This document shows positions 3,615 to 37,914 of a DNA stretch of 64,000 bases, one piece after another; position 1 is the first letter of the stretch; each line of letters begins with the position of its first letter. The DNA comes from Phaeosaccion multiseriatum (taxonomy: Eukaryota > Protista > Ochrophyta, other classes): assembly GCA_965112735.1 (NCBI GenBank), contig OZ218962.1, positions 186,001 to 250,000 of the forward strand, read 5' to 3'. The position numbers were made by a program, and so were the translations under genes. Under the pieces are notes generated by a model. It was not told the DNA's origin and searched no databases. It saw only the letters and a list, made by a program, of their open reading frames with translations.

Positions 3615-6600
3615 GGCGTGCATGCGGGCGTGCATGCGGGCGTGCGTGCATGGCGGGGAGGAGAGGGGGCACATGGAGGGCATTGGCGGCTTAGCGTGGC
3701 ACACCAGGGAGCGGTTGGGGGCTTCCTTCCTTCCTTCCTTCCTTCCTTCCACCTCTCTCAAGTCTCATCCCATCTCCATCGCATCGCTCTGTCGTGCCTC
3801 TTTGTCGACGTGTCGTCACATTCCCCAGACCCGACTGGATGGGCGCGCAAAGGCGTGGGCTGCCCGAGACGCTGCGCTGCTTGCGCTGAAGGAGCAGAGG
3901 GAGTTGGAGGGGTGCACTTTCAAGCCCAAGCCCATGCGCAGCGCATCGGCGCCCAAGTGAGTGCTTAGAGCCTCCTGTGTGGGGGACAGGGGGAGGGGGA
4001 GGGGCAGGGGAGTGCTCCGGAGGGGTGTGCGAATGACGACCTGGGATGCCGAATGGATGTCTGACAGAGGAGGGGGGGGGGGGGGCTGTCACGCTTGCTC
4101 TTGTCATTCAGCGCAGACTTGCACAGTGGATGCGTATGGGGCATTCCCTGTGTCCCTGCCCTGACGTTGGCACCACCTTGCTCTCTCTCACCTGCCCACC
4201 TGCCCACCTGCTCGCTACGTGCGCGCCCATTGCCCTTCATCTCTCCCTCTTCCTCGCTCTCCAGACTGAGGGCCCACCGCTCCAACCTGAGCTTCGACGA
4301 GAGGACACAGCAATACCTGCAGCAGAGAGAGCAGAATATGCGCAAGCTGCAGCAGCAGAAGAAGGAGCAGGAGAAGAAGGAGGCCACATTCAGGCCAGAC
4401 ACCTCCTCCTCCTCCTCCTCCTCCTCCTCCTCATCCCCCGCATCCACCGCCGCCTCCGGCTCCGGCAGTCGGGGCCGGGGCCGAACGCGAGGCAGAGAGG
4501 GAGACCAGCAGGCCGTAGCTCCTACAGAGGGGCAGGACGGCGAAGGGAGCAAGGAAGGAAAGGAAGGCGCCTCTACCTCTACGGAGGACGTGTTCGCTCG
4601 GCTGCAGCAAGGCCTCATCAGCAAGGAGGCGGCGAGGAAGGCCCTGGCGGAAGGGGTGGCCAAGGTGGAGACGGAGCAGTGCACCTTTAAGGTGGGTGGT
4701 TCACAGGCTGGCCTCAGGGGCACGTGTTGGTAGTCTGCTGGGGGGAAGGATAACAAAGCAGCAGCCGAGTGTGTCCGTCGTACGACCGCCTGCCTGGAGA
4801 CCCTTGAAGCACTGCTTCCCATTCCCAGGCTATGAAGAAGGGGGGGCTTTCCACTGCACCCTTCCTGCTTCCTTCCTTCCTTCCTTCCTTCCTTCCTTCA
4901 TTCCTTCCTTCCTTCCTTCCTTCCTTCCTTCCTTCCATCCTTCCTTTCCTTGCCTCCGAGCTCCCCTCACGTCCTCCTCCCTCCCGTCCTCTCCCTTGTG
5001 TAACCCCCGCCTGTCTCCGCGCTGTCGTGCCCTCCTTCCTGCCTCTGCTTGACCTCTCCCCTTCTTGATTTGTTCCTTCCTCTGCTCAGCCCCAACTGTC
5101 TCGGCGCTCTGCCTCTGTGAGCCGCATCCGCCCTACCAAGAGTATCTATGACCATCTCTTCAACAGGGGCGCAGAGGTCTCGGAGAAGGTAAGCCACTCA
5201 CTCACTCACTCACTCACTCACTCACTCACTCACTCACTCACTCACTCACTCACAGAAGTTCGTCAGGTTGTGTGTAGTAATGTTGTGTTGGGAGGCTGTG
5301 GGTGATGAGAACAGCTCCCATGTGGTCATCGATGGCAGCTGATGGCAGCTGATAGGACACACCAGGGGGGGCGTACACAGCAGCCCAAGTGGCTCTATTT
5401 CCAAGGCACTGGCACCGAGCACTAGCACTGAGAACTGGCTCTGAGCACGGGCACTGAGTACTGCGTTGCCCCACCCCTTTAGTCGGGCGGAGTGCCAGGC
5501 ATGACCCAAGCATGACCACCAGGCATGACCCAAACATGGCCACCAACATGACACAACCATGACCACCAGGCATGACCCAAACAGGACCACCAACATGACC
5601 CAAGCCGCCCCATCTTGCCCCCCTTCCCGCCTCTCCCCCCCCCTCTCTCGTCCCTGCCCTTCGTCGCCCTCTTCTCCTCTCCTCTCCTCTCCTCTCCCTC
5701 TTCAGCTCAAGAAGGAGAGGGAGCTGCGAAAGGAGCAGGAGATGGAGGACTGCACATTCAAACCCACACTTCCCAAGACACCCAAGAAGAAGAAGGGCGC
5801 CGCTGCCTCTCCACAGCAAGACCCCCGTGAGTAGTATTGCAGTGTCGAGGTGGAGTGCAGCGGTGCAGAAGGGAGGGAATGGGACTGTCTGTCTGTCTGT
5901 CTGTCTGTCTGTCTGAGGAGCTGAGCCCCTTGCAAAGGGGCAGGGGCAGGTGGGACAGGGCTACGGAGGGAGGCAGACAGCGGGAGAGTTTCTTGCTCTC
6001 TCTCTGTCTCTCTCCCTCTCCCCTGCCCTATCTCTCTCTGCCTCTCGCTCCCTCTCTCCCTCTCTTTCCTCGGTCTCGGTCTCCCCCATTCTGCCCCCCA
6101 TCTCTCTCTCTGTGTGTGTGTGTGTGTTTGCCCCTCTCCCTCTCACATGCCTGGATCCTTGATCCATCCTGTCTGCTTCTCTCTCTGCCGTTTATGCCAT
6201 ATCAAGCAGAAGTGGACCCTCGGCCCCCCTGGGAGAGGCTCCACGAAGACCGCACTGCCAAGGAGAAGCAATGGAAGGCCGCCAAGGTGTGTGTGTGTGC
6301 GTGTGTGTGCGCGCGCATGTGTGTGCATGTATCCGTCCAGTTGGGGATACACACAACATACCAAAAGTGCGCCCGTTCGGAGTAAAGAACTTCACCGTAC
6401 CTGCCTCTCTCGCGCTGCCTTGTCGACTGTCGCTCCAAATGTGTAACGGCTGTAACGGCATGCCCCCCTTTGACCCCGTAAGGTATCGCGTAGTGTCCAG
6501 CCTCATCGGAGTCGAGTCCTGCCTGTTTGCCTCTCTCTATTGTTCGGTATGCGCAGAGCTCTCACATGCCATTGCCCCCTCTCCTCTCGCTCTCTCCCTC

Positions 6601-6650
6601 TGTTGCTCTTCCTCATCTCCCCCTCCCCTCTCTCTCTCTCTCTCTCTCTC

Positions 6651-6685
<35 letters not shown>

Positions 6686-7852
6686 TCGCAGGAAATCAAC
6701 GACCTCCAGGGCTGCAGCTTCTCCCCTCACATCAACAAGCCAAGGGCCAGCGACAAGGAGGCAAGCCCTGAGGCTGCCCTCCCGGCGCATGAGCGGCTGC
6801 TGAGACTGGCGCAGCTTAGCGAAGAGGAGAGGTCAGTCAGACGACCAGAGCAATGGCCAGTGAGGGGCAGTTTCAGTTTATTAGACAGGGAGGGGCTTCG
6901 CTATGGCTACCTACACCCATCGAAACACTCACTCGCTTGCCTTGCTCTTTCTTTGCGGTGGTGTGTCGTGCCCAGGAAACGAAAACTGGCGGAGCGGCAG
7001 CTGGAAGGATGCACCTTCACCCCACGCATCAACACGGAGCCTCTGACCACGGGCTCTCCTGCCGCGAGCAAGACGAGGGCACGGGGGACCCAGGGGAGCG
7101 GCTCGTTCGGAGAGGAGAAGGAGAAGGTGGAGGGGGAGGGGGAGGGGGCAAGGGAGGAAGGGCAAGGGGACGAGGAGGAGGGAGGGGGGAGAGGGGGCAC
7201 ACCCTCGCGGAGCATTTACGAAAGGTTGACGGAAGACTCTGTAGATAGGAGGGGGAGGGAGATGCTGAGGGAGAGGCTCCAGAGCGAGGCGGAGGCGTCT
7301 CGCCACCCCTTCGCGCCGCAGCTGTACAAGAGGCCAGCAAAGGCGGAGGCGGGGGCTCCGAAAGAGGTGGCGAGGAGGGGCAGCACCGCCGGTGGAGAGG
7401 CGAATGGGCCGCGCCCGAGCAGTAACGGCGGCAGCGGCAGCGGCAGCGCGGTCAAGAAGACTGCCAAGAAGGCCAAGGCTGCTTCTGCGCCCCCCGGGAC
7501 AGAAGGCGCCGTTGCAGCCTCCTCGGGGGAGGACAAGGCCAATGGCGCGTCAAGGAAGACAGCAAGTAGGGCAAGTAGGGCACAAAGGCCACAGGGCGGG
7601 GGGGATAGGGAGCGTGAGGAGCGGAGGGGGGCAGCAGCACCAGCGAACGAAGCAGCGAAGGCCAAAGCAGCGAAAACGACGAAGCCAAAGCCGAAGCCGA
7701 GCGTAAGCAGCGTCCAGTCTAGCGTCCAGCAGAATGGACACGCTGCACCCACGGCAGCGGCCGAGCAGCAGCAGGAGCCGGAGGGGGAGGAGCGGTTGGC
7801 GAGTCTCGAGCAGTGGGAGGCAGGCATGCAGGCAGAGCTCGACGCCTTGTGA
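2240..7852 (+). CDS. Multi-exon charged/coiled-coil protein with ~8-9 (E/G)CTFxP repeats; function unknown, possibly cytoskeleton-associated
   Basis: ATG at 2240, stop at 7850-7852, GT-AG introns. Exons carry GCSFTPQ, GCTFSPQ, GCTFKPK, ATFRPD, QCTFK|PQ, DCTFKPT, GCSFSPH, GCTFTPR and HPFAPQ, alternating with a short S-x-(F/Y/W/H)-(E/D)-R-L-like motif. Confidence 0.7.
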
Positions 7853-8281
7853 TACACAACTGCGTCGCCGATCCACCGAGACCCATTTCCTCCTCTTACG
7901 ATTGGCACTAGTACTTCAAAGAAGGAAAGCACGTGTCACGGCACGCTTCCCGAAGAGCATGTGAGAGGAGTCACAGCTAGCTAGCTAGGGCGTGTCATCG
8001 AATCGATGCACAGACCCCAAAACAGCGGGAAAAAGGAAAGAAAAACTAAATTAATAAAGGGGCGCCTTTTTGCCCAAATAGAACGCGCCAAATTCTCCAA
8101 AATTCTGTGTTTCGTTGGCCCGCCCGAAAAAATATCCAGCTGCAGCTGCACTAATAAAAAGCAGTCTTCGTGCCGTGCTGGAGTAGTAGGAAGCTAGCAC
8201 TAGGAGCAATCCGGTAATAGGGAGTAGAGCAGCGGTAGTAGCAGGAGCGCCACCCATCCACCTTCACTGGTTGTGTGACTA

Positions 8282-8727
8282 ATGGCTCCCCTCTACTATG
8301 GTGGTCTTTTGTTGGCCCTCGTCGGTCTTCAAGGGGACCTGAGTGAGGCGGGCAAGGTGCTCAGGTTCTCGGACGAGTTTGGCACCTTTGACAGTTCCAC
8401 ATGGACCCGTGAGGTGCTGCCCTACACAGTGAACCAGGAGCTGCAGACGTACACCACGGATCCCGCCAACTCCAACGTGGCGAATGGAGTCATGTCTGTG
8501 ACTGCTATCGCTCAGAGCGGTGGGGGCTACACGAGTGCAAGGCTCTCCACGCAAGGGAAAATGGTGCTGAACTATGGCACGGTCGAGGTGGAGGCCAGGC
8601 TTCCGTTTGGCCGGGGGACATGGCCAGGCATTTGGATGCTCTCGGATCAGGAGCCCCATGGAAGCTGGCCTCGCAGCGGCGAGATGGATATCATGTAAGG
8701 ATGAGAATTCCTTCCCTTCCCTCTCTA

Positions 8728-8770
<43 letters not shown>

Positions 8771-10210
8771 CTCTCTCGCTCCCTTCTTTATCTGCCCCGC
8801 TCTGTTTTTTTGTGGTTTCCCCCCCCCCTCTCTATTTTCTCTTTTTCTCTGCCCTTCAACCTCCCTCCCCCCCAACCAACCCACAGGGAGCACGTCGGCT
8901 TCAACATGGATGTCGTGAAATCGGGCATTCACTGCGACGAGTCCAACTTTCGCAAGTTTTGGGTAGACCGCGAGGGCGTGGAGCAGAACGGGGACGTTGA
9001 TCTCAGTAACGTGGACACGGAGTATCATACTTACAGGTTGCAGTGGACCCCCGACGGCATTACGTTCAGCGTTGATGACCTCCCTCCTCACATATATTAC
9101 AACAACGATCGGTTGGGTGACAAGGATACTTGGCCTTTCGACGACGGTTAGTGAAGCAATGCCAAGAGTGAACGGACAAAAGAAGCGTGGAATGCTGGAC
9201 GTGCATCTGAACACCTCTCTCTCTCAACGTCCTCTCCTCAGGCAATGACTTCTACCTCATCATGAACCTCGCCATCGGCGGCGGGTGGTGAGTGGTGAAG
9301 ATGGCAGGAAATGTCAACAGGGGCCCTTGGTCATGCCGCCTTCTCATTCCTTCATGCCCGTACCCTCCCTCGCTTCGACACTGCCTGACTGACTCATGAC
9401 TGCTGCAGGGGGGGACTGCAGGGTATCGACGAGAGTGTGTTCCCCTCCACGATGACGGTGCGTTCAGTGCGTGTGTTCGAGCCACCCATCTACAAGCGAG
9501 GTCCCAACCTGCTAGCGAACCCAGACTTCGAGAATGGACTAAGTGGCTGGAACACATACACTGGGCCCGTCAGTGGCGCAAGCTCAATTCGTATGGAGGG
9601 TGATCAGGTCCGCTTCTTTATCAACGTGGCCGGCGAGGGGTGGCACAGCCAGCTGTCACAGCAGCAGGTACGCATCAAGTACACGTATTAGTCGTAAGTC
9701 ATTACGTCTCTGTCCTTCTCAGGGCGATGGCAGTGGAGGGGGAGGGGGGGGGGAAGGAGAGAACAAACAGCAGATCAGTCAAAGGGGCGAGCGGAGCCGC
9801 CGACAATGGAGGCACCAATGGACTGGTGGACTGTATGAGGCAGATCTGCTGGTTTGCGTGAAGCAGATGGATGGTGGTGAACACAACGAGCATGCCACGA
9901 AGGACAGAAAGAGAGGCTCTAACTAGAGCACCCCCCGCTGCCTTACTGCCCACCGCACCCACCCACCCTCCGCCCCCTCTCCACCCCCCTCCATCTACAC
10001 GCCCTTCCTGCCTCCGCCCCCCCCCCAACATCAGTGGGCCAACGAGGGGCAGCAGTTTTGGTTGTCCTTCTGGGTCAAGAAAGTATGGAGTAAGTGGAGT
10101 GTGTGGGCATGGACGAGGCATCTGCCAACCAGGGTTGCCCTACCCCTGTCGATCGGCAAGAGACACCTGCATTTCTGACTGACTTTGCTTAACTAACCTA
10201 TCTCTCGCGC

Positions 10211-22372: not shown

Positions 22373-25250
22373 TTATGCAACGCGCGTGTCGATGGATTGG
22401 TATCCGGACTGGGGGGCGGAGGAAGCAGGGCGGGACACGGGCTGAGCGTTGGGGTCTTCGTGGTCGTAGATCTCCTTCGTCACCCTGGGGGAGTTAGAGG
22501 CGTATGGGGAGAAGAGTAGAGAAGGGAAGGGGGAGAGTACAGAGTCAGGCCGGAGGATATAATGGACATCGTAGAGCATGTCTACTCATGTCTACTGTAT
22601 AGAGAGAGCCCATCCATACAGGCCCCGACAACACAGCCAACAACAACAGCCCCTTGGAGGAGGTGAGCAGCGAGGAGGTGAGGTGAGGAGCTAAGAGGGG
22701 AGGGGAGGTGGGCTCTCTCTCTCCAGTTCGTGCCTCCTTGGGCTGTAAGCAGCGCCAAGCAGCGCCTCCCTCCCCCAACTCACGCGCACACCCACGCACG
22801 CGCACACCCACCCACCCACCCACGCTCGCACGCACGCACTCACCTCGGCGCCAGAATGAGGCACCCGATGATGGTGACTGTGCGAAGCGACACAAGTGGC
22901 GTGTAAGGTGAGTGCGATGGGCACAAACGGAAGAGGAGACGGGGGGGAGGGGAGGGGAGGGGAGGGGAGGGGTTGAGAGGAAGGGGGGGGATGCAGGCAT
23001 GGCATGGGCCAAGCCTTGAGCCTTACTGCTACTGAGCAGGAGGGGAGGCTCCAGCGCCTTACGAGCACAGCACTGTCAATGTCAATGTCAATGTCAATGT
23101 CAATGTCAGGCGCTGACAAATCGCACAAATCTCACAGAGAGAAAGAAGCAGCGCTCCTGCTGGCCCGCTCAAAGAGACCGTCTCTCATTTTGCTCTTTCG
23201 GAGAGAGGATACAGCCCACACACACACATACGAACTTACCAACGATGAGGAAGTACCACACGGCGCCCCATCCGTACGCGTCAACAAGGGGCCCCACAAT
23301 CGACATGCCGAGGGCCGCAGTGATGCTCCCCGAGCCGTTGATGATGCCCGTCACAGTGCCCAGGGCCTTGCTGTTTCCGGCGATGGATGGGTGACCGGCA
23401 AGGTCGGCGGACACGGCAGAGGTGATGATGTTGTTGGGACCGCCCACAAGGCAGCCCATGGCCAGCAGCAGGGGCATGAGAACCGTTACGGGCATGACGT
23501 CTGAGTATTCCGCGAAGAACCACAGCAGGGGGCACAGGAACGAGAGGAAAGACACAATGACGCACGCCCTTCGTCCACCGTAGAGGTCAGACACAAACCC
23601 CACGATGATACCACCGGGCATCATGCCCACATCGTAGAGGGTGGAGATGACGTTGGCCTCGCTGGAGGTGAAGAAGCGGTTGAGGAAGAAGGGCAGCCAG
23701 AAGAAGAGCACGTAGTTGACGAGCTTGAAGAAACCGAAGGCAAGCGCGTATCCCGCCACGGAGGGGATCTTGAAGGCCTGTTTGTTTGGTGAGGGGATGA
23801 GGTGGGAGGGGGGCAGGGGTGGGGGAAGAGATGAGTGAATGAAGGGTGTCAGGCCAGACACATAAGACAGCTCATTCACACTTTGGGTTGATTGTAAGGC
23901 ACGGAACTCGGCCCGCGACAGGGGAGAGACAAGAGGGAGGACAGCGAGAGAGAGACAGAAGAGATTGGACAGAAGAAGAAGAAGAAGAAGAAGAAGAAGA
24001 AGAAGAAGAAGAAGAAGAAGAAGAAGAAGAAGAAGAAGAAGAAGAAGAAGAAGAAGAAGAAAACAAAGAGAACACAGGTACCTCAAGGATGGAGATGGGG
24101 GGGGGGTCGTTGGAGCCGGGAGCCTTGATCTTGCGGGGAGCCTTGCCCTCAGGCTCTGGGCAACCCGCCTCCTCAGGAGAGGCAGGCAGCGTCCACAGGC
24201 ACACGAAGCCCCACAACGCGTTGGTGATGGCAGGGACGAGCACGGCCCACTCGTAGCCAATCCCGCTGGACAGGATGTACGAGGCAACGAGGGCGGCCAC
24301 GACGTTACCGGCGTACTGATGGCAAGTCCAGGTGCCGAAGATGAGGCCTCGGTTCTTGGGGCCGAACCAGTTGCCCATCACGGCCGTACCCACGGGGCCG
24401 CCGATCGCCTAGGGTGGGTGTGAGGGGTGGGGAGAAGGGAAAGTGTGAGTCCGGGCATGCTTACGTTTATTGGGCATGACAGTCGGTCGGGCAGGACATG
24501 AGCAGGACATGACTGTAGTGCTGTGCCCGCACGAGCCGAACGCCTTCGATACGATGCACCACACACACACACACGCACACACACACACCCACACACACCC
24601 ACACACAGCGCTTAGAGGCCGACCCTCCCCCCCTTCGCAATGAATCGAGTAAGAGCGAGTGAGTTGTGGGCTCACCTGGAAGACTCCAAAGACAAGCCAA
24701 TTGGCCAGCAGGAAGGCCGTGCCCAGGGGCAGGCTGTAGGCCGTGAGGTTGTTCCATACAGTGGACCAAACCAACGCTACCACGCACACCGCAGAGCCGA
24801 ACAGCCCAATGGCGATGATGGTGGGGGCGTGGTAGCGGTCTCCCAGAGACCCCATGAAGAAGGATCCCACGGCGTAGGCTGCCATAAAGGCTGTGTCCAT
24901 CTGGGACAGCACCACCTTGCTGATGCCGGCGCTCTTCTCCAGGTCCACCTTGACGTTGGTGTAGCACTTGCGGCTGAAGTGGTTCATGGCGTAGGCCATG
25001 AAGGTGCTGAAGTACACGTTCACTTGCTGCTCGCGGAGCTTGGCGCGTCCGTCCTCCTGGGACGACTGGTTGGGGACGGGAGGTAGGTAACGAGCAGCAG
25101 GGAGGCAGAGGAGGGAGGACAGAGTGGTTAGCTGTAAGTAAGTGCTCCTCCTCACGAGACTTCGTCGTGCCCAATAACTGAAGAACCAGAGTCGGCATTA
25201 TAGCTCCTCTGCCTGCCGCCACAGTTTCGAATCTTCTACACTTCGGCCCA
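22373..25250 (-). CDS. MFS organophosphate:Pi antiporter, SLC37A/GlpT-UhpT family (sugar-phosphate exchanger); start codon uncertain (~25198-25251)
   Basis: Spliced exons give HFSRKCY, GSLGDRY, MGNWFGPKNRGLIFGTWTCHQYAGNV, YALAFGFFKLVNYVLFFWLPFFL, GGIIVGFVSD and ALGTVTGIINGSGSI. The last exon ends ...SGYQSIDTRVA* at 22373. Confidence 0.9.
23971..24060. repeat. (GAA)n tract, intronic
   Basis: About 30 perfect GAA units. Confidence 0.95.
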
Positions 25251-25860
25251 TTCTTCGGACGACAGCTACCGAAGAGCTGGGGGTGGCCCCTCGGCTTCCC
25301 GTTCCCTGCTTCTCTACTCGCCCAAGACCTGCTGTCCTGATCCCCATTGCCCAACGCTCCTCTGGTGGGAGCTGCAGATGCCATCGACGCGCCCTACTCA
25401 GTCTTCGGAAAGCCACACACACTTTTCGGGCTGTCCCTGCCTCCCTTTTCTTTCAGCCCTCGGCTCTGCCTGCGAAGCGAATATTCCCGCTGCTCGCCAG
25501 CCCTGGCCACAAGCATGAGCTCTTTGGGGAAGATGTCAACGCCAAATGCTCCCTCCGCTCTCCCTTCTCTCCCTCGGTTCCTTTTCGACTGCTGGTCCCT
25601 CTCTTGCCTCCTCCTCTCCTCTTACCGGCTGTCCCTTCCCGATAAGGGGCCCCGTAAGGGAATCCTGCTCCTGGTAGCTCGCCATGCTGCTTCTGAGTGT
25701 GCTGCAGCGCCTGTCCTGTCCCCCCTTTGCTCCCCTCTCTCTTCCTCGATTGTCTGGCCACCGCTCAAACAAAAAATCAAACCACGCCGTGCCCCGGGGG
25801 GCCCTCCTTGCCCTCAAAGGGGGCTTGTCATCAACTATCAATTTTCCCCTTTTACAAGCG

Positions 25861-26770
25861 ATGGCGTCCTATCTGAGCGGCGGTAGGGCCGGCTACGAGT
25901 CCGTGGATGGCGTGGACACTGCCGACGTCGCAGGTCTGCCGCACAGTGCTGCGAGCAGCGGCAGCAGCGAGGGCAGCGGGTCGCTCTGGAAGAAGCTGGG
26001 TTTGGGGGTGCTCGCTGTGGTGGCCATTGCGGCTACTGTGCGAGCGGCGGGGAGCAGCAACAGCAGCACCAGCGCTCCTCGGGCTGCCGCTCCGGAGTAC
26101 TCTGGTGCGTGGGTGGGGCGGCGGAGAAAAGGAAGAGGGAGGAGGGCGGTAGAAGATTTTGTGAAGGAGGGAAGTGGAAGGCGGGGAAGGGAGGGAACAG
26201 CATTTGAATTTGCATGTCGCCTGCGCTCAGTGCACGCCGCCGCGCTTCACATCTGCCGCGCACTGGGGTCTATCCTCTCGTGTGCGGCTGCTGGGCCAAT
26301 GGTCCAAAGTTTGCAGCCCCATGTATCGTACTCGCTCGCTCTGCCTTTTTGTTGTTTGCCTCGCGAATCTTGGATACTTTCTCCCGAACATGTTCATCTC
26401 GTAGCGACTTGTTGCAATGAGCGGAAGCACTGGACTCTGACTCTCTCCTCCTCTCTTCCGACTTCGATCCCCCTCTTTCCCTCTCCCTTGCTGCCTCCCT
26501 GTGCTCGGCTCCTCTCGCTTCTCCCCTTTCTCTTTTGTGTCTCTCATCCATCAACAGATGCGGCCTCGAAGACCACCTCTCTAAGCCATAAAGTCACCTC
26601 CGTGGAGGACTCCTCCTCCTTGGAGCACTTCGACAAGGTGAGTACACAAACACACACACAGAGAGAGAGAGTGACACTAGCGAGAGAGGGCTGAAAGAAA
26701 AGGGAGAGGGGAGAGGGAACAGGGCAGAGTGGCACACAGGAGATGCGGCCAGCCCAGCCTATCCGCCCAA

Positions 26771-26804
<34 letters not shown>

Positions 26805-27653
26805 CCTTACCCGGCGCTCTCGGTTGCAATGGGCGTGCGTGTACTTCGGTGCCCAAACAGCTGCCCTAACAACCCCCCACCGCTACCCCACCCCACCCCA
26901 CCCCCCTCAGCTTGGCCGCTACGTGATCCCTAACTACGACACGATCAAGCCCTTCGCCTCCTTCCTCCCCGGCCTGGCGGGCAAGTACGGCACCCCCATG
27001 TGGGCCTTCTACGTGAACCGCGGGCAGATCATGGCCGCCTTTGGTATCGAGAACAAGGAGCACCCCCTGCTCGAGTTCGAACCCGCCAACTTGGCCTATC
27101 AGCAGATCCCAAGGACGGGCTTCAGAACCTTCCTGCGCGCACAGAGAAAAGGTGAGAGGGGTGGGAGGCTGAGGGAGTGGGGGGGTGGCAGGAAGGGTCA
27201 GGGTCAAAGAGAGGGTGAGGGGTGAGAGGGTGAGGGGGTTAAGGGGTGAGGGGCGAGAGAGTGAGGGGGCGTGTGAGGGCGACTTCGGCCCCTTGCTTGA
27301 CACTTGCTCGACAAATTGCTTGACACTTGCTTTGACACTTCAGAGGAGGAGACGGAGTTTGTGTTCGAGCCCTTCAAGGTCGGCACGCCCGACGTATCCA
27401 GGTCCATCTTCGTCGGCATGAACGAGGTGGAGATCCAGGAGGAGGACGACAATGTGGGGCTGCAGACCAATGTGCTGTACTACACCGTGCACGAGGAAGA
27501 GTTCCCGGGGCTGGTCAGGCGCACCACCGTCAAGAACACCGGAGACGTACGTGAGGGGGACTGGGTGGGCGTCGGCGTACGGATGAGCGCACGCACACAC
27601 ACACCAGCCTATTGCTCTCGTGTGCCGCTGTATCTCTCACACACTCTCACTCG

Positions 27654-27684
<31 letters not shown>

Positions 27685-27768
27685 TCCCTCCCTGCCTCTC
27701 CCGTCCGACAGACCCCCATCAGCTTCGAGATGCTCGATGGCTTGGCCCGCCTGCAGGTGTGTGTGTGT

Positions 27769-27809
<41 letters not shown>

Positions 27810-30800
27810 GGTGTGTGTTTTGTTTGTTTCGTGTAGAGCAGTGCGCTAGGCCCAGCCCCAAGGAGTAGGGCTCTTGTAACTGCCGTCTACCTGCACACGC
27901 TCTCCTCTCTCTCCTGACCCCTCCGCTTCTGATCCCTCTTCCGAGGCTTCTCCCTTCTCAATATCAATACTCCCTTCCCAACCAACCTCCCTCCCCCCTG
28001 TCATCCCCTCACCGTTCCCCTCCCCGCCCTGTACCACCAACAGCCCTACGGCGTGTTCGACTACTACATTAAGTCAATGGACCGCACCGTGGAGGCCTGG
28101 ATGACGGCGTACAACATGAACGATATGGGGCATGGCACCCTTCCTTACTACAAGCTTTCCGCCTCCATCGTGGACAGCGAGGTGGTGACCATGATCATCC
28201 CTGGCAACTACGCGCTGGGCTACCTGGAGGACGACAAGACTGGCAAGGACAGCAGCCACGGACTGCTGCCTATGATCGTCGACCCCTCCATCGTGTTCGG
28301 ACAGGTGAGGTGGATAGAGGGAGTGAGGTGTGTGGTGGTGAGGTGGATAGGGGGAGTGAGGTGTGTGGTGGTGAGGTGGATAGAGGGAGTGAGGTGTGTG
28401 GTGGTGAGGTGATGAGGTACTTAAGTGGTGAGGGGGGTGTTTGGGGGTGGGGGTGGAAGATTGTATTGTCTTGTCTTGTCTTGCCTCACGTGTTGGTGCT
28501 CTGCTCCGCTCAGCGGCACTCACTCCCTCCTCCATCCACTGCCATCTCCCTTCCCCTCAGGACACCACCTTCACCAACCCCTTGGGCCTGGAGGCCGTGC
28601 CTCTCTCGGAGCTGCTCAAGAGGAAGCACACCACCACAGGTCAGTCCCTCACTCACTCAGTCAGTCAGGCAGGCAGTCAGTTAGTCAGTCCGTCAGTCAG
28701 TGAATCCGTCAGTCAGTCAGTCGGTCAGTCAGGCAGGCAGTCAGGCAGGCAGGCAGGCAGTCAGCAAGGCAGTCAGTCAATAAGGCAGTCAGTCACTCAG
28801 TCAAGGAGTCAGTCACTCAGTCAGTGAGGTCAGTGCAGTCAGTCAGTCTGGCAGGCAGACAGGCAGGCAGTCACTCAGTCAAGGAGTCACTCAGTCAGTC
28901 AGTCGAGCAGTCAGTCAGTCAGTCAGGTAGGCAGGCAGTCACTCAGTCAAGCAGCCAGTCAGGCAGGCAGGCAGGCAGGCAGTCACTCAGTCAAGGAGCC
29001 AGTCAGTCAAGTAGTCACTCACTCACTCAGTCAGTCAGTCAGTCAGTCAGTCAGCAGGTGGGGCACTGGCGTAAGCAGAAGTGGGACCGAGGCGGCGTCG
29101 TGCAGGAGAGGCCTCGGCTCGGGCTTGCTGTTGCTGTTGCTGTTGCTGTTGCCGTTGCTGCTGTGTGTGCCTGTCCACCCCTTTTGTCCCAGAAGCGGAC
29201 ACGTGTGTAGTGTGTATGGATGGGCTGTCAAGCCGCTCTGGGGGGGGGGGAGGGGGGGGTCAGAGAGCTGAGCTCTATTTATCTTTTGTCAGGGAGGGGG
29301 GGGGGGCTGAGGAGGCGTTGAAGTGAAGCAACACGGGGAGGGGCGACACCGATGGCATGACACGTTGCCGTTACGCTTAAGGAACAGAAGCTGTCAAGCA
29401 AGTCACGCACTTACGTAAGTACTGTTTCTCCTCCCCCCGTCCACTGCCATCCCTCCTCCCTCCCCCCTCCCCCAGGCCGCACGCCCTGCGGATTCGCCGC
29501 CACGCCCATGCTGACACTCAAGCCCGGTGAGAGCACGACACTGACCTCCATCTGGGGCAAGGCCAACACCATGGGAGAGCTCAAACACCTCATCGCTCCG
29601 ACAGTCACCTCCATCGGATTCCTCAGGTACAGGGAGGAGGGGCAGGGGGGAGGGGGGAGGGCAGGTGGGAGGGCATGCCCTGCTGGGGGGAGCTTACAGT
29701 TACAGGAAGTACTTCCTAAGCTTTGTGCTGCGCTGAGGCTCAAGGCGCGTTGGTTTGCCCTTAACGGCTCTTAACGGCTCTTAACGGCTCTGCTCTGCTC
29801 CGAAATTTCACTCTACGTACTCCTCTTACTTTGTTCTCTCTCTGTCCCTCTCTGTCTGTCTGTGTCTCCCTCCCTCTCTCTCTCTCTTGTGTGTTCTCTC
29901 TCTGTGCTCTGCTCACAACAGCGCCAAGCGCACGGAGGCCCAGCAGCTCATTGAGGAGCTCACCAGACACGTCAAGACAGACTCAGGTGAACACAGAAGG
30001 CCAGAGTAGGGCAGAGTAGGGCAGAGTAGAGGCATGCGGGCGGGCAGAGTAGAGTAGCGTAGAGGCGTACAGCCAGCCAGCGGGGACGGACTTGCACAAG
30101 AGACACCCGACACCCGACACCAGGCAGTACCCGCGCTCTCCTGCCTGCCCGCCCTCAAACAAGTGTCCGTATACCCATACGCCTGCCGCTCCCTCCCTCC
30201 CTGCCTGTGTGACTGCCTATGAGTGCAGCTTCCCAACTGTTCGACGGTTACGTGCAGTACAACTTCATGGACAACATGCTCCGCGGAGGGTACCCCGTGC
30301 TGCTCGGAGACCCCAAGAGCCCCAAGGTACGTGACAGATGCGGTTACAGGCGTTTCAGGCGTTACAGGGGGCAGGGTAGTATAAGATAAGGGCAGCATAT
30401 TCATTGACAGCGGTAGACAGAGACAGACACATAGGTTGCTCATTCTGTAACGCCATTATGTAACTGCCTTCCTCCCTCCTCAGATCTACCACACCTTCTC
30501 TCGCATCCACGGCGACTTGGAGCGCGACTACAACTACTTCGTCATTGCGCCCACCTACTACTCGCAAGGCCCCGGCAACTACAGAGACGTGAACCAGGTT
30601 GGTACGGGGGTGGGGCATTCACTCCACTCGCGCATTCACACACTCACTCCCTCACCCCCTCCCTTACTTGCTCACTCACTCCCTGACTCAATCTCACCCC
30701 CGCACCCACCCACTCACTCACTACATCCCTCACTCTCTCCCTCACTCACCGACTCTCCCCTCTCCTCCTCCCCTCCCCTCCTCCCCTGCTCTGCTGCTTG

Positions 30801-33003
30801 CCCTCCAACAGAACCGCCGCAGTGACGTGGCGTGGCAGCCCCTGGTGGGCGATTACAACATCCAAACCTTCATGAGTCTGCTGCAGGCCGACGGTTACAA
30901 CCCCATGACTGTGCAGAGTGTCGTGTTCAACATCACCGACCAGGACAGAGGTGAGGGGTGGGGGAGGGAGGGAGGGAGGATGGCAGTGGAAGGAAGGGTA
31001 AAGTAAGTAGGGAAGAAGAAAAGGTAATTGGAACTGAAACTAACCTTTCGTTGTGTGTGCGTGTGTGCGTACTTGTGGCAGTGTACGACATCGCCTCGAA
31101 GGTGGTGCCGGAGGAGAATGTAACCGCCCTCGCTGGCCTCATTCAGGTGAGGCAGTCAAAGGCCGGGATGGATAGATGGAAGGAGAAATGCGAGGGAGGA
31201 AGGGAGAAGGAAGGAAGGGAGGGAGGGAGGGAGGGAGGGAGGGAGGGAGGGAGGGAGGGAGGGAGGGAGGGAGGGAGGCGAGGGGTTGGAGGGGGGATCG
31301 GGGCTCTTGAGCTTAGCAGGGAGGGCTGAGGTCAGCCCTTGCACCGGGGGGGGGGGGGGGCTTCGTTTACCCCCCCCCTTCAATGCAGCTCCTTCTAGGC
31401 TCCTCCATCTGACTTGCTCTGTGCTCTTTCCTCCCCCCCCCCCACCCCTCAGCCCCCCTTCCGCCCCGGCACGCTGTTCATGGAGATGAAGGACGCAGGC
31501 CTGCTGCAGGAGCTCAGCGTGAGCAAGGAGACATTCCTCAACCTCATCACCGAGGCTGCCGTGCAGATCCCGCAGGTAGGGGGGGGGGTGTCAGGACAGG
31601 GACAGATTGGACGAGTATGGAGTGGTTTCCAGGACTGCTTGCGTTCCTTGCATGCGTTTCATCCCCTCCTGTGCCCTCTGTACCCGCACATGCAATCAAT
31701 CGGCCAATCATTCAGAGCCTACTGCAGCTACTAACTCCTCTTCCTCCCCATACACCTCTACTCTTCCTCCCCATACCCCTCTACTCTTCCTCCCCATACC
31801 CCTCTACTCTTCCTCCCATACACCTCTACTCTTCCTCCCACACACCTCTACTCTTCCTCCCCATACGCCTCTACTCTTCCTCCCCATACACCTCTACTCT
31901 TCCTCCCCATACACCTCTACTCTTCCTCCCCATACACCTCTACTCTTCCTCCCCATACACCTCTACTCTTCCTCCCCATACACCTCTACTCTTCCTCCCC
32001 ATACGCCTCTACTCTTCCTCCCCATACGCCTCTACTCTTCCTCCCCATACCCCTCTACTCTTCCTCCCCATACGCCTCTACTCTTCCTCCCCATACGCCT
32101 CTACTCTTCCTCCCCATACACCTCTACTCTTCCTCCCCATACACCTCTACTCTACACCTCTACTCTTTCCTCCCCATACGCCTCTACTCTTCGTCCCCAT
32201 ACGCCTCTATTAGGCGGACTTCTCGCAGGGTTTCTGGTGCGACCACTGGACGTACACGCAGGACTTGTTCGAGTCGTACCTGTCCATCTTCCCCGAGAAG
32301 CTCGAATACCTCCTGTTTGACTCCAGCCCCGTGCCCACTTACCTCAGCCCCAACAAGGTCAGTCAGTACCTGGTGTCAGTCAGTTAGTCAGTCAGTTAGT
32401 CAGTCAGTCAGTCAGTCAGCCAGTCAGTCAGTCAGTCAGTCAGTCAGTCAGCCAGTGAGTCAGTCAGTCAGTCAATCTGTCAATCTGTCAAGTCTGTCAG
32501 TCAGTCAATCTGTCAATCTGTCAAGTCTGTCAGTTTACTCGGGTGGGTCGCTGGGTAATTCAGTGAGGGTATGAAGGAGTGAATATGTGCGACCTCGTAG
32601 ATACCCCCCCCCTTCCCACATGCTTCTTACAAACCACCCCTCCCCATACGCCTCCACCCAACGCCCCACTCCTCCCTCAGGTGGTGCGCCGAAAAGAGAA
32701 ATACGTGTTGGTCGACGCCGGCTCCGGTAAGGTGCGACAGCTCGGTATGAACGTTGCCGACGGCGACAAGACGAGGCAGCTCGCCATGAACGCCAACGAC
32801 CCCAACGGCGTGTGGATGTGCGTGGAGGGCACGCAGGAGGGGGGCACGGACGCGCCTGGCTCGGATCCTTTCAGCAGCCTCGGTGTGCCGACGGGGATGG
32901 GCAAGTGCGACGTGTTCTATCAGGTGAGGGCAGGGGGAGGGGAGGGGGGATTTATTGACTTACCTGAATCAACCTAAGAATTACGTGAATCAATCGAAGA
33001 ACT

Positions 33004-33041
<38 letters not shown>

Positions 33042-36000
33042 TGAGGCGTGAGGGGGTGCTTAGAGCGGTGAGGAAGGAGCGTAGGGGCTCATGTTTGCTT
33101 GCGGGCTTTCCTGCTCCCCTCTCTTGCTACTGCCCCTCCAACCCTCCTCCCTCTTCCGTCTTCGTACCCCCCTCCCATACATATCCCTATACCCTATACC
33201 CCCATATGCCTATGCATACCCTTTGCCCTATACCATCATACCCCATACCCCCATACCCTTTATCCCCATATGCCTATGCATACCCTTTACCCTACACCCT
33301 CATACCCTATACCCCTATATGCCTGTGCATACCCTCATATCCCCATATGCCTATGCATACCCTCATACCCTATACCCCTATATGCCTGTGCATACCCTCA
33401 TACCCTATACCCTCACACCCCGTACCCCATGTCTTCAGTCGGTGGCCTCCAAGTACACGATGCTTGTGGCAGTGAAGTTCGCCCTTCTTGACCCCCTGGG
33501 CATGGCCATCGAGATGGAGGGCGGCAAGCCGGGATGGCTCGACGCCCTCAACGGCCTGCCCGCCCTTTTCGGCAGCTCCATGCCGGAGATGTACGAGCTC
33601 CACCGTTACACCACCTTCATCCGCACCAGCATCGACAAGCTCGGCAGGTGAGGCATGAGGCAGCAAACAGGCAGCGCAGGGAAGCGCAGAGAAGCGGCGT
33701 ATGGGCGTAGAGTGAATTGGTGTAGCCTACCCTTCTCCCCCACCGCCTTGTCTCAACGCTAACTCTGGCGGCCAAGCTGCCCTCAACTCACCCACGTACT
33801 CACCCACCCATTCTCAACCTCTTTTCGTCCCCCTTCCACCCATTCCTTCCTCATCGACTGCCATCCCCTCCCCTTCTCTCCCTTCCCTCCCCATGGACTG
33901 CCATCCCGTTCTGATGCAACAGGGACGTGGATGTGTTCGAGGAGCTTGACGGGCTGCTCACAGGACTCGGGGACTGTCTGGACACCTACTCAGAGGACGC
34001 AGACGACTTCGCCTACTGGAACTGCTCCGCCACCGCCAGGGAGAACTACAGAGATGTGAGTGGTTAGAGGCATACGATGAGACAGGTTGGAGGCATACGA
34101 GGAGACAGATTAGAGGCATACGAGGAGACAGATTAGAGGCATACGAGGAGACAGATTAGAGGCATACGAGGAGACAGATTAGAGGCATACGAGGAGACAG
34201 ATTAGAGGCATACGAGGAGACAGATTAGAGGCATACGATGAGACAGATTAGAAGCATACGAGGAGACAGATTAGAGGCATACGAGGAGACAGATTAGAGG
34301 CATACGAGGAGACAGATTAGAGGCATACGAGGAGACAGATTAGAGGCATACGAGGAGACAGGTTAGAGGCATACGATGAGACGGGGAGGACTGCAGAGAT
34401 GTGAGTGGTGGTTAGAGGCATACGCACTCACCTCTCAGCTGCTTAGAGTGTTTGTTTGTTCGAGGGGGGGCACTGACTTAAGTGACTTGGGGGGCACTGA
34501 CTTAAGTGACTTGGTGGGCACTGACTTAAGTGACTTGGGGGGCACTGACTTAAGTGACTTGGGGGGCACTGACTTAAGTGACTTGGGGGGCACTGACTTA
34601 AGTGACTTGGTGGGCACTGACTTAAGTGACTTGGGGGGCACTGACTTAAGTGACTTGGGGGGCACTGACTTAAGTGACTTGGGGGGCACTGACTTAAGTG
34701 ACTTGGGGGGCACTGACTTAAGTGACTTGGTGGGCACTGACTTAAGTGACTTGGGGGGCACTGACTTAAGTGACTTGGGGGGCACTGACTTAAGTGACTT
34801 GGTGGGCACTGACTTAAGTGACTTGGGGGGCACTGACTTAAGTGACTTGGGGGGCACTGACTTGAGTGACTTGGGGGGCACTGACTTAAGTGACTTGGGG
34901 GGCACTGACTTAAGTGACTTGGGGGGCACTGACTTAAGTGACTTGGGGGGCACTGACTTAAGTGACTTGGGGCACACACACACACACACACACACCGCAG
35001 TCACTGCAGACCACGCGCACACGCTCCCTTTCCCTCTCTCTCTCCCCTGCCCATATGCCTGCCCATATGCCTGCCCATATGCCTGCCTGCCTGCCCGTAC
35101 GCCTCTAACCCTCCCCCCTCCTGCCTCTGCCTCTTCCAGCTGACGAGGCTGACCCTAACGGGCAAGACGGTGTCGTGGAGCGCGAGTGACCTTGTGGACC
35201 TGCTGGACCGTATGCTCGAGAAGATCAATCAGGGCATCAAGAGGGCCTCCGAAGCCAACGATGGGTACCCTCCCTCCTACTTCAGGTACAGAAGTCAATG
35301 AATGGTACATAAGTCAATGGTACACAAGTCAATGGTACACAAGTCAATGCGTGTGTGTGTTTGTTTGTTTTGGGTGTGTGTGTATGTGCGTGCGTGTGTG
35401 TGCGTGCGTGTGTGTTTTCGCGTGGTTGAGTGTGCGGGCACTACAAGTAGACAATGAGAGGCGCAGATCCCCAACCATACCCAATACCTCACACCTGTGA
35501 CGACTAACACCCCTTACTCCTGTGATCGCCATGCTGTATCGAAAACCTCTTACTCCTGTGATCGCCATGCTGTATCGGAAACCTCTTACTCCCGCCAGGT
35601 GGGAGGTGACTGAGTACGAGCTCACAGGCACAGAGGACGCCCAGCTGAGGCCCTACGTCATCGCCAAGGTCAGGCATATGGGCAGAGATGGAGGCACATG
35701 GGCATACACATTGAAAGGCCTTGCTTGTGGTTGGGCCTTGGCTTGCGGTGGGGGGGGGGGGGGCTCCTGTGATGATTATCTTTGTTGGAATTACCGTCTG
35801 ACTTCTCGAGTGAGGAAAATCACAGCTGGCTGCTACTTCTGAGGACCTACCCACCCACCCGTCCAACCACAGCCCAACCACACGCAAGGCACACACTCTC
35901 GCCAGTCTCTCCTCGCACACACGCACACACGCACGCACTCACCCCACTGCCCCCCTTCCCACCTTGGCTCTCCCTCTCTCTGTTGCTGTGCTGTGGTCTG

Positions 36001-37914
36001 CTGTGGTCTGCTGGCCTCTCTTTGCCCTGCTTGGCCTTCCACAGGGCTTCGAGCCTTTCGTGCTGCCCCTCTTCCTCGAGGGCTCTGTGCGCAACATGAA
36101 GGTACGTGAGGGGAAGGGGTCGAGAATGTCGAGAATGTCAAGAATGTCGAGAATGTCGAGAATGGCAGCATATGGCACGATGAGAATTCATTCGATCTCT
36201 GACATGACGTGTCGATGGAGGCCTTTCCCTCCTCCCTTCCTCCCCCCCTCCCTTTCTCCCTCGCTCTCTCTCCCCCTCCTCCCTTCCTCCCTCGCTCTCT
36301 CTCCCCCTCCTCCCTTGCTCCCTCGCTCTCTCTCCCTCTCCCTCCCTTGCTCCCTCGCTCTCTCTCCCTCCCCCTCCCTCTTGCTGTGCTGAAGTGCGCC
36401 TCCTTCCTCGCTCTTGCGAGTCATTCCATTCTTGTTCCTTACGCGTAATGCCTCGGCCCTTTCTGTAACCACCATACCACCAACGCCTGTACGTGCCTCA
36501 CGACAGGTGCTGGACACCATCGACGAGAAGCGCGAGCTGTTCGAGACCACCAAGGCGGGCCCCCTGTACGACAAGATCCTGGCCATGTACAAGATTAGCG
36601 AGAACTTGGGGGAGACGACCTTCGAGATTGGCCGAGTGCAGGGCTTCTCGCCGGGCTGGCTGGAGAACGAGTCGAGTGAGTAGAGGGGGGTGATGCGGAG
36701 AGGAGAGGAGGGGAGGGGAGGGGAGGGCAGGCAGGGGAGGAGCGGTGGGGGAGGGGAGGGGAGGGGAGGGGAGGGGAGATAAATTCATGTGGGGCATTTA
36801 TGTTGACTGACGGCACGCTCCTCCTCCTCCCCCTCCTCCTCCTCCTCCTCCTCCTCCTCCTCCTCCTCCTCCTCCCTCCTCCCTCCCTCCCCCCCCCCTT
36901 CCCTTCCCTGCCTCCTCCCCCCCCCTTCTAGTCTGGCTGCACATGTCCTACAAGTGGTACTTGGAGATTCTCAAGGCAGGTCTCTTTGAGGAGTTCTGGA
37001 ACGAGGTGTCCACAGGCGTCGTGGTCTTCATGAACCCCGAGATCTACGGCCGCTCGCCTCTTGAGTGCTCCAGCTTCCTCGCCTCCAGCAGGTTAGTATG
37101 TGAGCGAGGTTGGGTCACGAGGTTGGGTCTCACCCTCCCTCGCTCCCTCCCTCCCTCCTTCCCACTCACGCACTCCCTCCCCTCCCCTCCCCTCCCCTGC
37201 CCTGCCCATCCACTGCCATCGCCCTCCCGAACTGCAGATACATGGACTCCTCCCTGTGGGGCGGCGGTTTCGTGTCCCGCCTGTCCGGCTCCACTTCGGA
37301 GTTCATGAGCATGTACAACTTGATGATGTACGGCCCCACCCCCTTCACCACCAACGCCAAGGGACAGCTCCAGCTCCAGCTGGTGCCGGCCCTGCCCGGT
37401 TGGTTGTTCAAGGAGGACGGCACGCTGACCTTTACCTTCCTGGGCATGGTCAATGTCACATACCACAACCCAAGCGGGGTAAGTTGGGCTGGCTGCTGCT
37501 GTATCACCAACTGCTGCTGCTGCTGAGGATGGGGCTGGGGAGGGGAATGGATGGAAGGAGAGGGGGAGGAGGGGAGAGCAGAGCAGAGCAGAGCGGAACG
37601 TCTTCCTGTTTTTCTGTCCTTTGATTTGCAGCCAATCCAATCAGTCCATCCACGGGAAGGGCTGAAACGGAATTCCCTCCCTCTCCTTTTGGTTGTACAT
37701 ACTTAACCTCGCCATCTTATCTCTCCACTGCCATTCCCATCCACTGCCATCCCCCCCTTCTCAGAGGGACACGTGGGAGGACTCAATGGAAGTGCTGCGC
37801 ATCTCTATGGACGACGAAGAGGAGGTCAGGGGATGGGAGCACGTCACTCACGACGCCGCTCAGAGGATTCGAGAGGGGCTCATCAGGAACCTCGACGTCT
37901 TCTACAGGGCCTAA
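25861..37914 (+). CDS. GH161-family beta-1,3-glucan phosphorylase with an N-terminal membrane anchor (~25 exons)
   Basis: Spliced motifs [25 protein letters not shown]...FG...EFEPANLAY...[50 protein letters not shown]|[50 protein letters not shown]|[20 protein letters not shown] and [13 protein letters not shown] match my recollection of GH161 (GH94/GH149-related) phosphorylases. Hydrophobic segment [15 protein letters not shown] at ~25996-26040. Confidence 0.88.
31735..32210. repeat. 23-bp minisatellite (TACACCTCTACTCTTCCTCCCCA)n, intronic
   Basis: About 20 slightly variant units running up to the splice acceptor at ~32212. Confidence 0.9.
34063..34385. repeat. 23-bp minisatellite (TTAGAGGCATACGAGGAGACAGA)n, intronic
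   Basis: About 14 units directly after a splice donor. Confidence 0.9.
34465..34972. repeat. 24-bp minisatellite (GGGGGGCACTGACTTAAGTGACTT)n, intronic
   Basis: About 21 near-identical contiguous units with no spacers. Confidence 0.95.

Follow-up and report, generated by a model that had tools for sequence, protein, structure and literature searches.

A predicted membrane-anchored GH161 beta-1,3-glucan phosphorylase, together with its SLC37-like neighbour, carries conserved tyrosine-type sorting motifs in the ochrophyte Phaeosaccion multiseriatum

Two divergent genes and their exons

The window analysed here, 64,000 nucleotides of Phaeosaccion multiseriatum contig OZ218962.1 (assembly GCA_965112735.1, positions 186,001 to 250,000 of the forward strand), has ~59% GC and contains two genes arranged head to head ~700 bp apart, with numerous small exons and repeat-filled introns. 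Its sequence identifies the plus-strand gene as a GH161 beta-1,3-glucan phosphorylase of bacterial ancestry, for which phosphorolysis is predicted; the minus-strand gene encodes a transporter of the major facilitator superfamily (MFS) that resembles the SLC37 antiporters. The predicted phosphorylase begins with a hydrophilic tail containing the motif GYESV, followed by a putative signal anchor, and the C-terminal tail of the transporter contains GYQSI. Both motifs are of the YxxPhi type (Phi, a hydrophobic residue), which recurs in the relatives of both proteins and suggests that enzyme and transporter may be sorted to one membrane. Coordinates of all features are collected in Table 1.

Table 1. 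Features of the GH161 and SLC37-like genes, in window coordinates
Feature	Position	Strand	Remarks
GH161 exon 1	25861..26104	+	contains start codon, predicted cytosolic tail (aa 1-45) and hydrophobic anchor (aa 46-60); stalk, Ser/Thr/Ala-rich, starts here
GYESV, YxxPhi-type motif	25891..25905	+	aa 11-15, 33 residues before the anchor; followed by acidic D16, D19, D22
Hydrophobic core, predicted signal anchor	25996..26040	+	aa 46-60, uncharged; flanked by KK (25990-25995) and R61
GH161 exon 2 (stalk)	26558..26637	+	acceptor cag 26555-26557, donor GTGAGT at 26638
GH161 exon 3	26911..27151	+	first conserved block of the catalytic protein; preceded by long pyrimidine tract and cag
Other GH161 exons	27344..37914	+	many small, introns repeat-rich; include 33439-33648
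Shared divergent upstream region of both genes	25156..25860		includes in-frame ATG at 25684; composition non-coding-like
SLC37-like MFS core exons	23240..25080	-	organophosphate:Pi antiporter family; 5' limit not resolved
Transporter micro-exon	22844..22877	-	34 nt; completes transmembrane helix 12 (VTIIGCLILAPR); joins core exon (end 23240) to tail exon
Last transporter exon	22373..22484	-	cytosolic C-tail VTKEIYDHEDPNAQPVSRPASSAPQSGYQSIDTRVA and stop codon
GYQSI motif	22391..22405	-	Tyr 9 residues from the C-terminus, 5 residues after the motif

Translation bears out, to the base, the first-pass annotation of exon 1 as a hydrophilic tail with GYESV followed by KK and a hydrophobic stretch: the product of 25861-26103 is a 45-residue hydrophilic tail, KK, a hydrophobic core and a Ser/Thr/Ala-rich linker. 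One codon base is left over at 26104, ahead of a G/GTGCGT donor at 26105, and the two missing bases are supplied by a small second exon, absent from that annotation, which ends in phase 0. Canonical GT-AG sites preserve the reading frame over exons 1, 2 and 3, and the claimed junction of exon 1 with the GH161 exons is upheld as a prediction, by way of this intermediate exon. The joint between exons 2 and 3 reads HFDK/LGRYV, and because relatives show the family motif FDxxGR[YF][VI] at exactly this position (FDELGRYI, FDKLGRFI, FDQLGRYV) we read the joint as rebuilding it. G+C content at third codon positions (GC3) agrees with the gene model, since exon 1 (0.77) and exon 2 (0.85) are coding-like beside the core exons (0.85-0.92), and neither the stop-free, in-frame intron 1 (0.53) nor the 59 in-frame codons 5' of the start, from ATG 25684 (0.59), are so. 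The predicted N-terminus, MASYLSGG, resembles those of relatives (MSSYQQGG in Chrysoparadoxa, MDSSYQRGG in Stephanopyxis, MGYQQGSGG in P0059). On these grounds the splicing of exon 1 to the GH161 exons is a well-supported prediction.

Two other models of the 5' end were considered. ATG 25684 was judged an unlikely start from its composition and from the N-termini of relatives, and a direct splice from exon 1 to 26861, also in frame, was rejected because the pyrimidine tract would become coding and the FD motif would be lost. The stretch from ATG 25684 to 25860 (MLLLSVLQRLSCPP...) is weakly signal-peptide-like, with a non-coding composition. Intron 1 (26105-26557) has 453 nt, a multiple of three, without an in-frame stop; its retention would add 151 residues and leave the protein unbroken, and its low GC3 argues that it is non-coding. 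Long tandem repeats in other GH161 introns (28.6-29.1, 31.7-32.2 and 34.4-35.0 kb) give long stop-free open reading frames (ORFs) in several frames (PLLFLPI..., GGTDLSDL..., SQSVSQ...), which could mislead gene callers.

Assignment to GH161 follows from sequence matches to solved members of the family. Exon 33439-33648 aligns with chains 9qqk and 9h8v of GH161 (E 4e-20), and a conserved block within it, a candidate active-site block, is nearly identical to theirs. A close relative, P0002, matches the same chains at E 3e-228 and a GH149 structure at 3e-11, and the NCBIfam GH149 model reaches no more than 85 bits where its cut-off is 1150. A Pfam scan gave no match for the GH161 exons, and Pfam annotation is also empty for every relative. 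Relatives were gathered by a profile-free HMMER search with exon 3 as query over 1.8 billion representatives (599 matches) and a word-based search with P0002 that added named algal and bacterial proteins, 266 proteins being collected in all. The named algal relatives added in this way come from Chrysoparadoxa, Tribonema, two pelagophytes, Heterosigma and Stephanopyxis; the bacterial ones are mostly from Anaerolineae.

In the transporter gene, a minus-strand ORF ending at 22373 reads ...KEIYDHEDPNAQPVSRPASSAPQSGYQSIDTRVA up to its stop codon, with SGYQSIDTRVA as its terminal residues, and the core exon ends at 23240, where a GTAAGT donor follows. The joined exons, WYFLIVVTIIGCLILAPRVTKEIYDHED, match WYFLIVCTVVGCALLYPKVKKEIFDHDE of Chrysoparadoxa (P0319) residue for residue, which assigns the GYQSI tail to the transporter; translation and exon joining together confirm the placement of this motif at first pass. 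Reading 'GKFVCVCVGCILSPK' as transporter coding sequence was rejected, as it is intronic, preceded by a G/GTAAGT donor, and the micro-exon gives the real helix end. The GT-repeat stretch right after 23240 appears coding (GKFVCVCVGC) but is intronic, lying behind this donor, and long GAG/CTC-type trinucleotide runs, translated as poly-Glu or poly-Leu, occur near and in the transporter gene region at 19.9-20.3 and 23.9-24.1 kb. The window exons match Pfam MFS_1. Their Chrysoparadoxa orthologue matches the TIGR00881, UhpT, GlpT and PgtP antiporter models, the first three below their equivalog cut-offs, and the source annotation of the transporter relatives is 'sugar phosphate permease'.

Tails, anchor and topology across the relatives

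An N-terminal extension distinguishes part of the GH161 family. Among the 266 relatives, 190 begin at most 40 residues from the conserved core, and 64 have at least 40 residues and a strongly hydrophobic segment ahead of it. In a tree of 80 sequences, all 34 tail-plus-anchor relatives fall in one eukaryotic clade (Shimodaira-Hasegawa-like support 100), in which the window protein and the enzyme of Chrysoparadoxa (54% identity) group as sisters. The five unanchored members of the clade are mostly gene models beginning inside or just after the anchor. Several anchored relatives are MMETSP transcript ORFs, so that in them a single mRNA encodes the tail, the anchor and the catalytic domain. From the single anchored clade it follows that the tail-anchor module was probably added once, after gene transfer from bacteria. 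Comparison of intron positions with Chrysoparadoxa was uninformative.

The motif seen in exon 1 is enriched across these tails. Among 55 Met-starting GH161 N-tails, with expectations obtained by shuffling each tail, YxxPhi occurs in 35 (12.0 +/- 2.9 expected; 0 of 2000 shuffles reach 35), in 32 of them with the Tyr motif inside the first 22 residues, Phi being mostly Ile or Val and acidic residues often following the motif. A second motif type, [DE]xxPL, occurs in 16 of the 55 (1.0 expected), and 45 carry YxxPhi, [DE]xxPL or [DE]xxxL[LIVM]. As a control, the stalk behind the anchor has YxxPhi in 4 of 55 against 3.8 expected. The window protein itself has a degenerate first motif, SYLSG, in addition to the canonical GYESV. 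At this one locus the coincidence of GYESV and anchor is uncommon but not decisive: in a six-frame check of the window, 2 of 164 ATG-started, stop-free 81-codon stretches have YxxPhi in their first 30 residues and then a comparably hydrophobic segment. It is because of the family-wide enrichment that we hold the combination to be non-random.

A corresponding pattern appears at the C-terminal end of the transporter. The C-tail of MFS proteins is cytosolic in the usual topology. We recovered 116 relatives with a recognisable helix 12; the C-tail is 18 residues or longer in 67 of them. YxxPhi occurs in 56 of these 67 tails (8.1 expected, a count that no shuffle reaches), its stricter form G-Y-x-x-Phi (G-Y-x-x-[IV]) in 44 (0.8 expected) and [DE]xxP[LI] in 17 (1.0 expected); the Tyr lies mostly 10-11 residues from the C-terminus, and the window tail aligns with RGYQSIN and ASYQAID of relatives. 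About 49 of the 116 (among P0267-P0386) stop a few residues past helix 12 (...KELTxHxK) without tail motifs, which suggests a second paralogue class with another address. The first-pass expectation that the motifs would be conserved in orthologues is thus upheld on both sides. The same two motif types recur on the enzyme N-tail and the transporter C-tail, and conserved cytosolic sorting signals in both are well supported by these counts. The pattern E-x-[TV]-P-L-[TKA] recurs in N-tails and C-tails of relatives, sometimes in several copies per tail (P0054).

The orientation of the enzyme was approached through charge and through glycosylation sequons. In the 64 anchored relatives, K+R average 3.48 per 15-residue flank on the N-side of the anchor and 1.34 on the C-side, the N-flank being the richer in 55 of 64; this asymmetry favours an N-terminus-in insertion, i.e. 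a lumenal catalytic domain. Comparison of the catalytic regions of 30 anchored and 120 unanchored proteins shows N-x-S/T sequons to be two-fold rarer in the eukaryotic anchored enzymes than in the bacterial ones (observed/expected 0.58 and 1.18, respectively), with control tripeptides alike in the two sets (S/T-x-N, the reverse pattern, 0.74 and 0.70; N-x-A/G, 1.16 and 1.10; D-x-S/T, 0.86 and 0.81). A bacterial fold that meets oligosaccharyltransferase would be expected to lose its sequons in this way, and a domain in the cytosol would not. The depletion points to lumenal exposure but is suggestive only, as it comes from one clade and may partly reflect a few ancestral changes. Taken over the family, the evidence that the enzyme faces a lumen is good, and from the family we infer the topology of the window protein.

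Golgi-type type II glycosyltransferases have a short cytosolic tail, a signal anchor, a flexible stem and a lumenal catalytic domain. The predicted GH161 protein has the same layout, differing in enzyme class and in its tail signals. Bacterial GH161 enzymes (PapP of Paenibacillus polymyxa, THA_1941 of Thermosipho; chains 9qqk and 9h8v) belong to the same catalytic family, the window exons aligning with them at E ~1e-20, but start ~10 residues ahead of the conserved core, without tail, anchor or stalk. These bacterial enzymes are soluble and cytoplasmic, and the family was founded on OcP1 of Ochromonas and bacterial PapP (PMC6484121). The window gene thus appears to encode an enzyme that is anchored in a membrane and probably lumenal, in a family whose known members are all soluble and cytoplasmic.

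The head-to-head arrangement also occurs in Chrysoparadoxa australica, where the MFS gene (6005-9663, minus strand) and the GH161 gene (from 10001, plus strand) form a pair that spans 6005-19208 of L001.

A shared destination and its alternatives

We propose the following explanation. An ancestor of the algal clade would have added an N-terminal module to a bacterial-type GH161, comprising a ~45-residue cytosolic tail with YxxPhi (here GYESV), a basic border (WKK) with a single signal-anchor helix, and a flexible Ser/Thr-rich stalk. The protein would then insert N-terminus-in, as a type II membrane protein, placing its catalytic domain in the endomembrane lumen. Its divergently transcribed neighbour, the SLC37/organophosphate:phosphate antiporter, bears the like signal GYQSI on its cytosolic C-tail; adaptor complexes would read both tails and carry the two proteins to a shared post-Golgi membrane, the most plausible candidate being the membrane of the vacuole in which chrysolaminarin is stored. 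At that site GH161 would turn glucan and phosphate into glucose-1-phosphate, and the antiporter would exchange this sugar phosphate against phosphate from the cytosol. What can be read directly from the sequences is the ORF, both motifs with their conservation, the identification of the proteins as GH161 and MFS members, the family charge asymmetry and the pairing in two lineages; the conjectural steps of the explanation are the binding of adaptors, delivery to the vacuole and the nature of the substrate that is transported. For the explanation as a whole, a lumen-facing anchored enzyme and an antiporter sorted together to one post-Golgi membrane that is most plausibly the storage vacuole, we judge the chances to be evenly balanced.

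The vacuole is favoured because chrysolaminarin accumulates there (PMC6484121), because the tails of relatives carry motifs like a known diatom signal, because of a mammalian parallel, and because of the need for antiport. The diatom signal is EGTPLL, which was validated experimentally as a vacuolar-membrane signal in Phaeodactylum and has the counterpart EASPLL in TPCL, according to PMC11085791 (citing Schreiber 2017). The E-x-x-P-L portion occurs in relatives' tails of both proteins (16/55 and 17/67), with the full PLL in few; most relatives have Thr, Lys or Ala after the Leu, and the two window tails differ from EGTPLL in being without the motif. The mammalian parallel is mouse SLC37A2 isoform 2, which has a C-terminal YxxPhi and is found on lysosome-related organelles (PMC9945426). 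It is likewise an SLC37-family antiporter with the motif at its extreme C-terminus, but it is an animal protein, has an unresolved physiological substrate and has no glucan phosphorylase partner. Phosphorolysis in a closed compartment would, moreover, need one-for-one exchange of phosphate and sugar phosphate, as by an SLC37-type antiporter. A vacuolar address for both proteins is, by this analogy, a good working hypothesis. Of the first-pass proposal that both proteins go to the same vacuolar membrane with the phosphorylase domain in the lumen, the sorting signals and the lumenal orientation therefore find support in the sequences, and the vacuolar address comes by analogy.

Several points weigh against this explanation, and some of them favour other accounts of the same locus. 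Because all the anchors go back to one origin, the relatives counted do not represent independent events. BLAST fails to align the tails, and conservation is confined to short motifs: BLASTP of exon 1 against the most similar-looking tail (P0059) returned only a spurious low-complexity match (E 0.095), and tblastn with P0387 gave a weak match over the anchor (E 0.62). Since the tails are otherwise unalignable, we take the short motifs to be what selection keeps, and compare the tails by motif rather than by alignment. Stephanopyxis and Chrysoparadoxa, the latter the nearest relative, have Y-x-x-G at the extreme N-terminus and not YxxPhi, and neither [DE]xxPL nor the acidic di-leucine [DE]xxxL[LI] occurs in either of the window's own two tails. 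The gene pair is missing in seven of the eight other genomes checked; no transporter lies within 10 kb of GH161 in Tribonema, the two pelagophytes, Heterosigma or three metagenomic picoeukaryote contigs. Head-to-head order may be one lineage's arrangement, kept over deep divergence, because the window enzyme is sister to that of Chrysoparadoxa.

The tyrosine motifs might direct the proteins elsewhere. LAMP1, LAMP2 and CD63 carry a lysosomal GYxxPhi signal, with Gly before Tyr in the consensus, 6-9 residues from the membrane and at the very C-terminus. Some algal transporter tails read GYQTI and are LAMP-like in this respect, but both window motifs lie ~30 residues from the membrane (GYQSI ~29 past helix 12), unlike LAMP-type signals, and that of GH161 sits close to the N-terminus, in a predicted type II protein. 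With the same anchor and topology, the enzyme could instead bear an endocytic/recycling, endosomal, food-vacuole or Golgi signal and act on ingested prey, wall or secreted glucan. Several adaptor complexes are known to recognise YxxPhi. GH161 first came to light in a phagotroph, Ochromonas (PMC6484121), and in-silico predictions assign the majority of the SLC37-like proteins of Phaeocystis to the cell membrane or endoplasmic reticulum (PMC11697108). We nevertheless consider such an address unlikely: a phosphorylase needs millimolar phosphate and recovery of its sugar phosphate, which a closed compartment with an antiporter fits better than the cell surface, the [DE]xxPL of relatives' tails is close to the validated diatom vacuolar signal (PMC11085791), and the clade includes non-phagotrophic algae, e.g. 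Tribonema and diatoms. The preferred destination has its own difficulties, as the phosphatases of a storage or lytic vacuole could destroy glucose-1-phosphate, and the choice of vacuole over another post-Golgi or endocytic compartment is drawn from analogy and from the site of substrate storage.

An opposite or peripheral attachment, by which the hydrophobic segment would tether the enzyme with its catalytic domain in the cytosol and the Tyr motif would serve regulation or phosphorylation, finds its best argument in the window protein itself. Its hydrophobic core is short (15 residues; Kyte-Doolittle 19-residue maximum 1.95) and its flank charges are balanced, 2 vs 2, with KK before the segment and one R immediately after it plus one more; the first-pass transmembrane segment stands as one that behaves as a signal anchor, with basic residues more frequent on the N-side in the family, and is less clear-cut in this particular protein. 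That the nearest relatives have Gly in place of Phi would also fit a cytosolic domain, as would the fact that all characterised glycoside phosphorylases act in the cytoplasm (PMC6484121 and general knowledge). We regard this account as improbable, given that the N-side is the more basic in 55 of the 64 relatives, that a sequon-specific depletion in the anchored cores is then hard to explain, that the same motif types sit on a transporter C-tail which is cytosolic in MFS topology, and that the substrate is stored inside the vacuole (PMC6484121).

Finally, the tail-anchor reading of this locus could be an artefact of the gene model, with exon 1 outside the mature GH161 mRNA or with translation beginning at ATG 25684, which lies in frame 59 codons 5' of the proposed start and could lengthen the protein if transcribed. 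A sequencing-run search for the locus returned four DNA data sets from one sample, with contigs continuous through the introns, and no RNA library, so that both the splice joints and the start of transcription are predictions. An open frame extends from 25684 through intron 1 to 26694, and GC-rich DNA readily gives ORFs rich in Ala, Gly, Val and Leu, 17 of the 164 random ATG-started window stretches being equally hydrophobic. The drop in GC3 outside exon 1 (0.77 against 0.59 upstream and 0.53 in intron 1), splice phases that fit, a joint between exons 2 and 3 that restores a conserved motif, the lack of a start codon of their own in those two exons, an N-terminus like those of relatives and the occurrence of the module in nearly all full-length members of the clade together make an artefact very improbable.

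Phosphorolysis and chrysolaminarin breakdown

The heterokont GH161 proteins already described (OcP1 and its orthologues; Kuhaudomlarp 2019, Chabi 2021) belong to the same eukaryotic clade of bacterial origin, and a role in chrysolaminarin breakdown has been proposed for them. Their localisation was left open (PMC7965971): TMHMM applied to 11 stramenopile GH161 models found one helix only in two Phaeodactylum proteins, a result that Chabi et al. called inconclusive (PMC7965971, Suppl. Table 2). We found no description, in the open-access literature, of conserved tail motifs, of a topology argument or of a transporter partner for GH161. Current schemes of chrysolaminarin breakdown contain glucanases only (PMC8811913).

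The tail-anchor module, the signal shared with the antiporter and the pairing in two lineages give a concrete model of enzyme placement, product exit and phosphate resupply. Its broadest form, in which ochrophytes run a self-contained phosphorolytic route in the storage vacuole, with anchored GH161 making glucose-1-phosphate and a co-sorted antiporter, co-regulated in some lineages, exporting it one-for-one against phosphate, is put forward tentatively, as a possibility that we think somewhat more apt to fail than to hold. If true, the vacuolar route would be the first case of a glycoside phosphorylase working in the lumen of the endomembrane system, and it would call for a revision of the textbook scheme, which is purely hydrolytic, for the use of chrysolaminarin, a polymer that ranks among the ocean's largest carbohydrate pools. 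The tail-anchor module may also account for the failure to produce an algal enzyme, OcP1, in E. coli (PMC6484121). The family would then offer a case of a bacterial cytoplasmic enzyme refitted for the eukaryotic secretory pathway.

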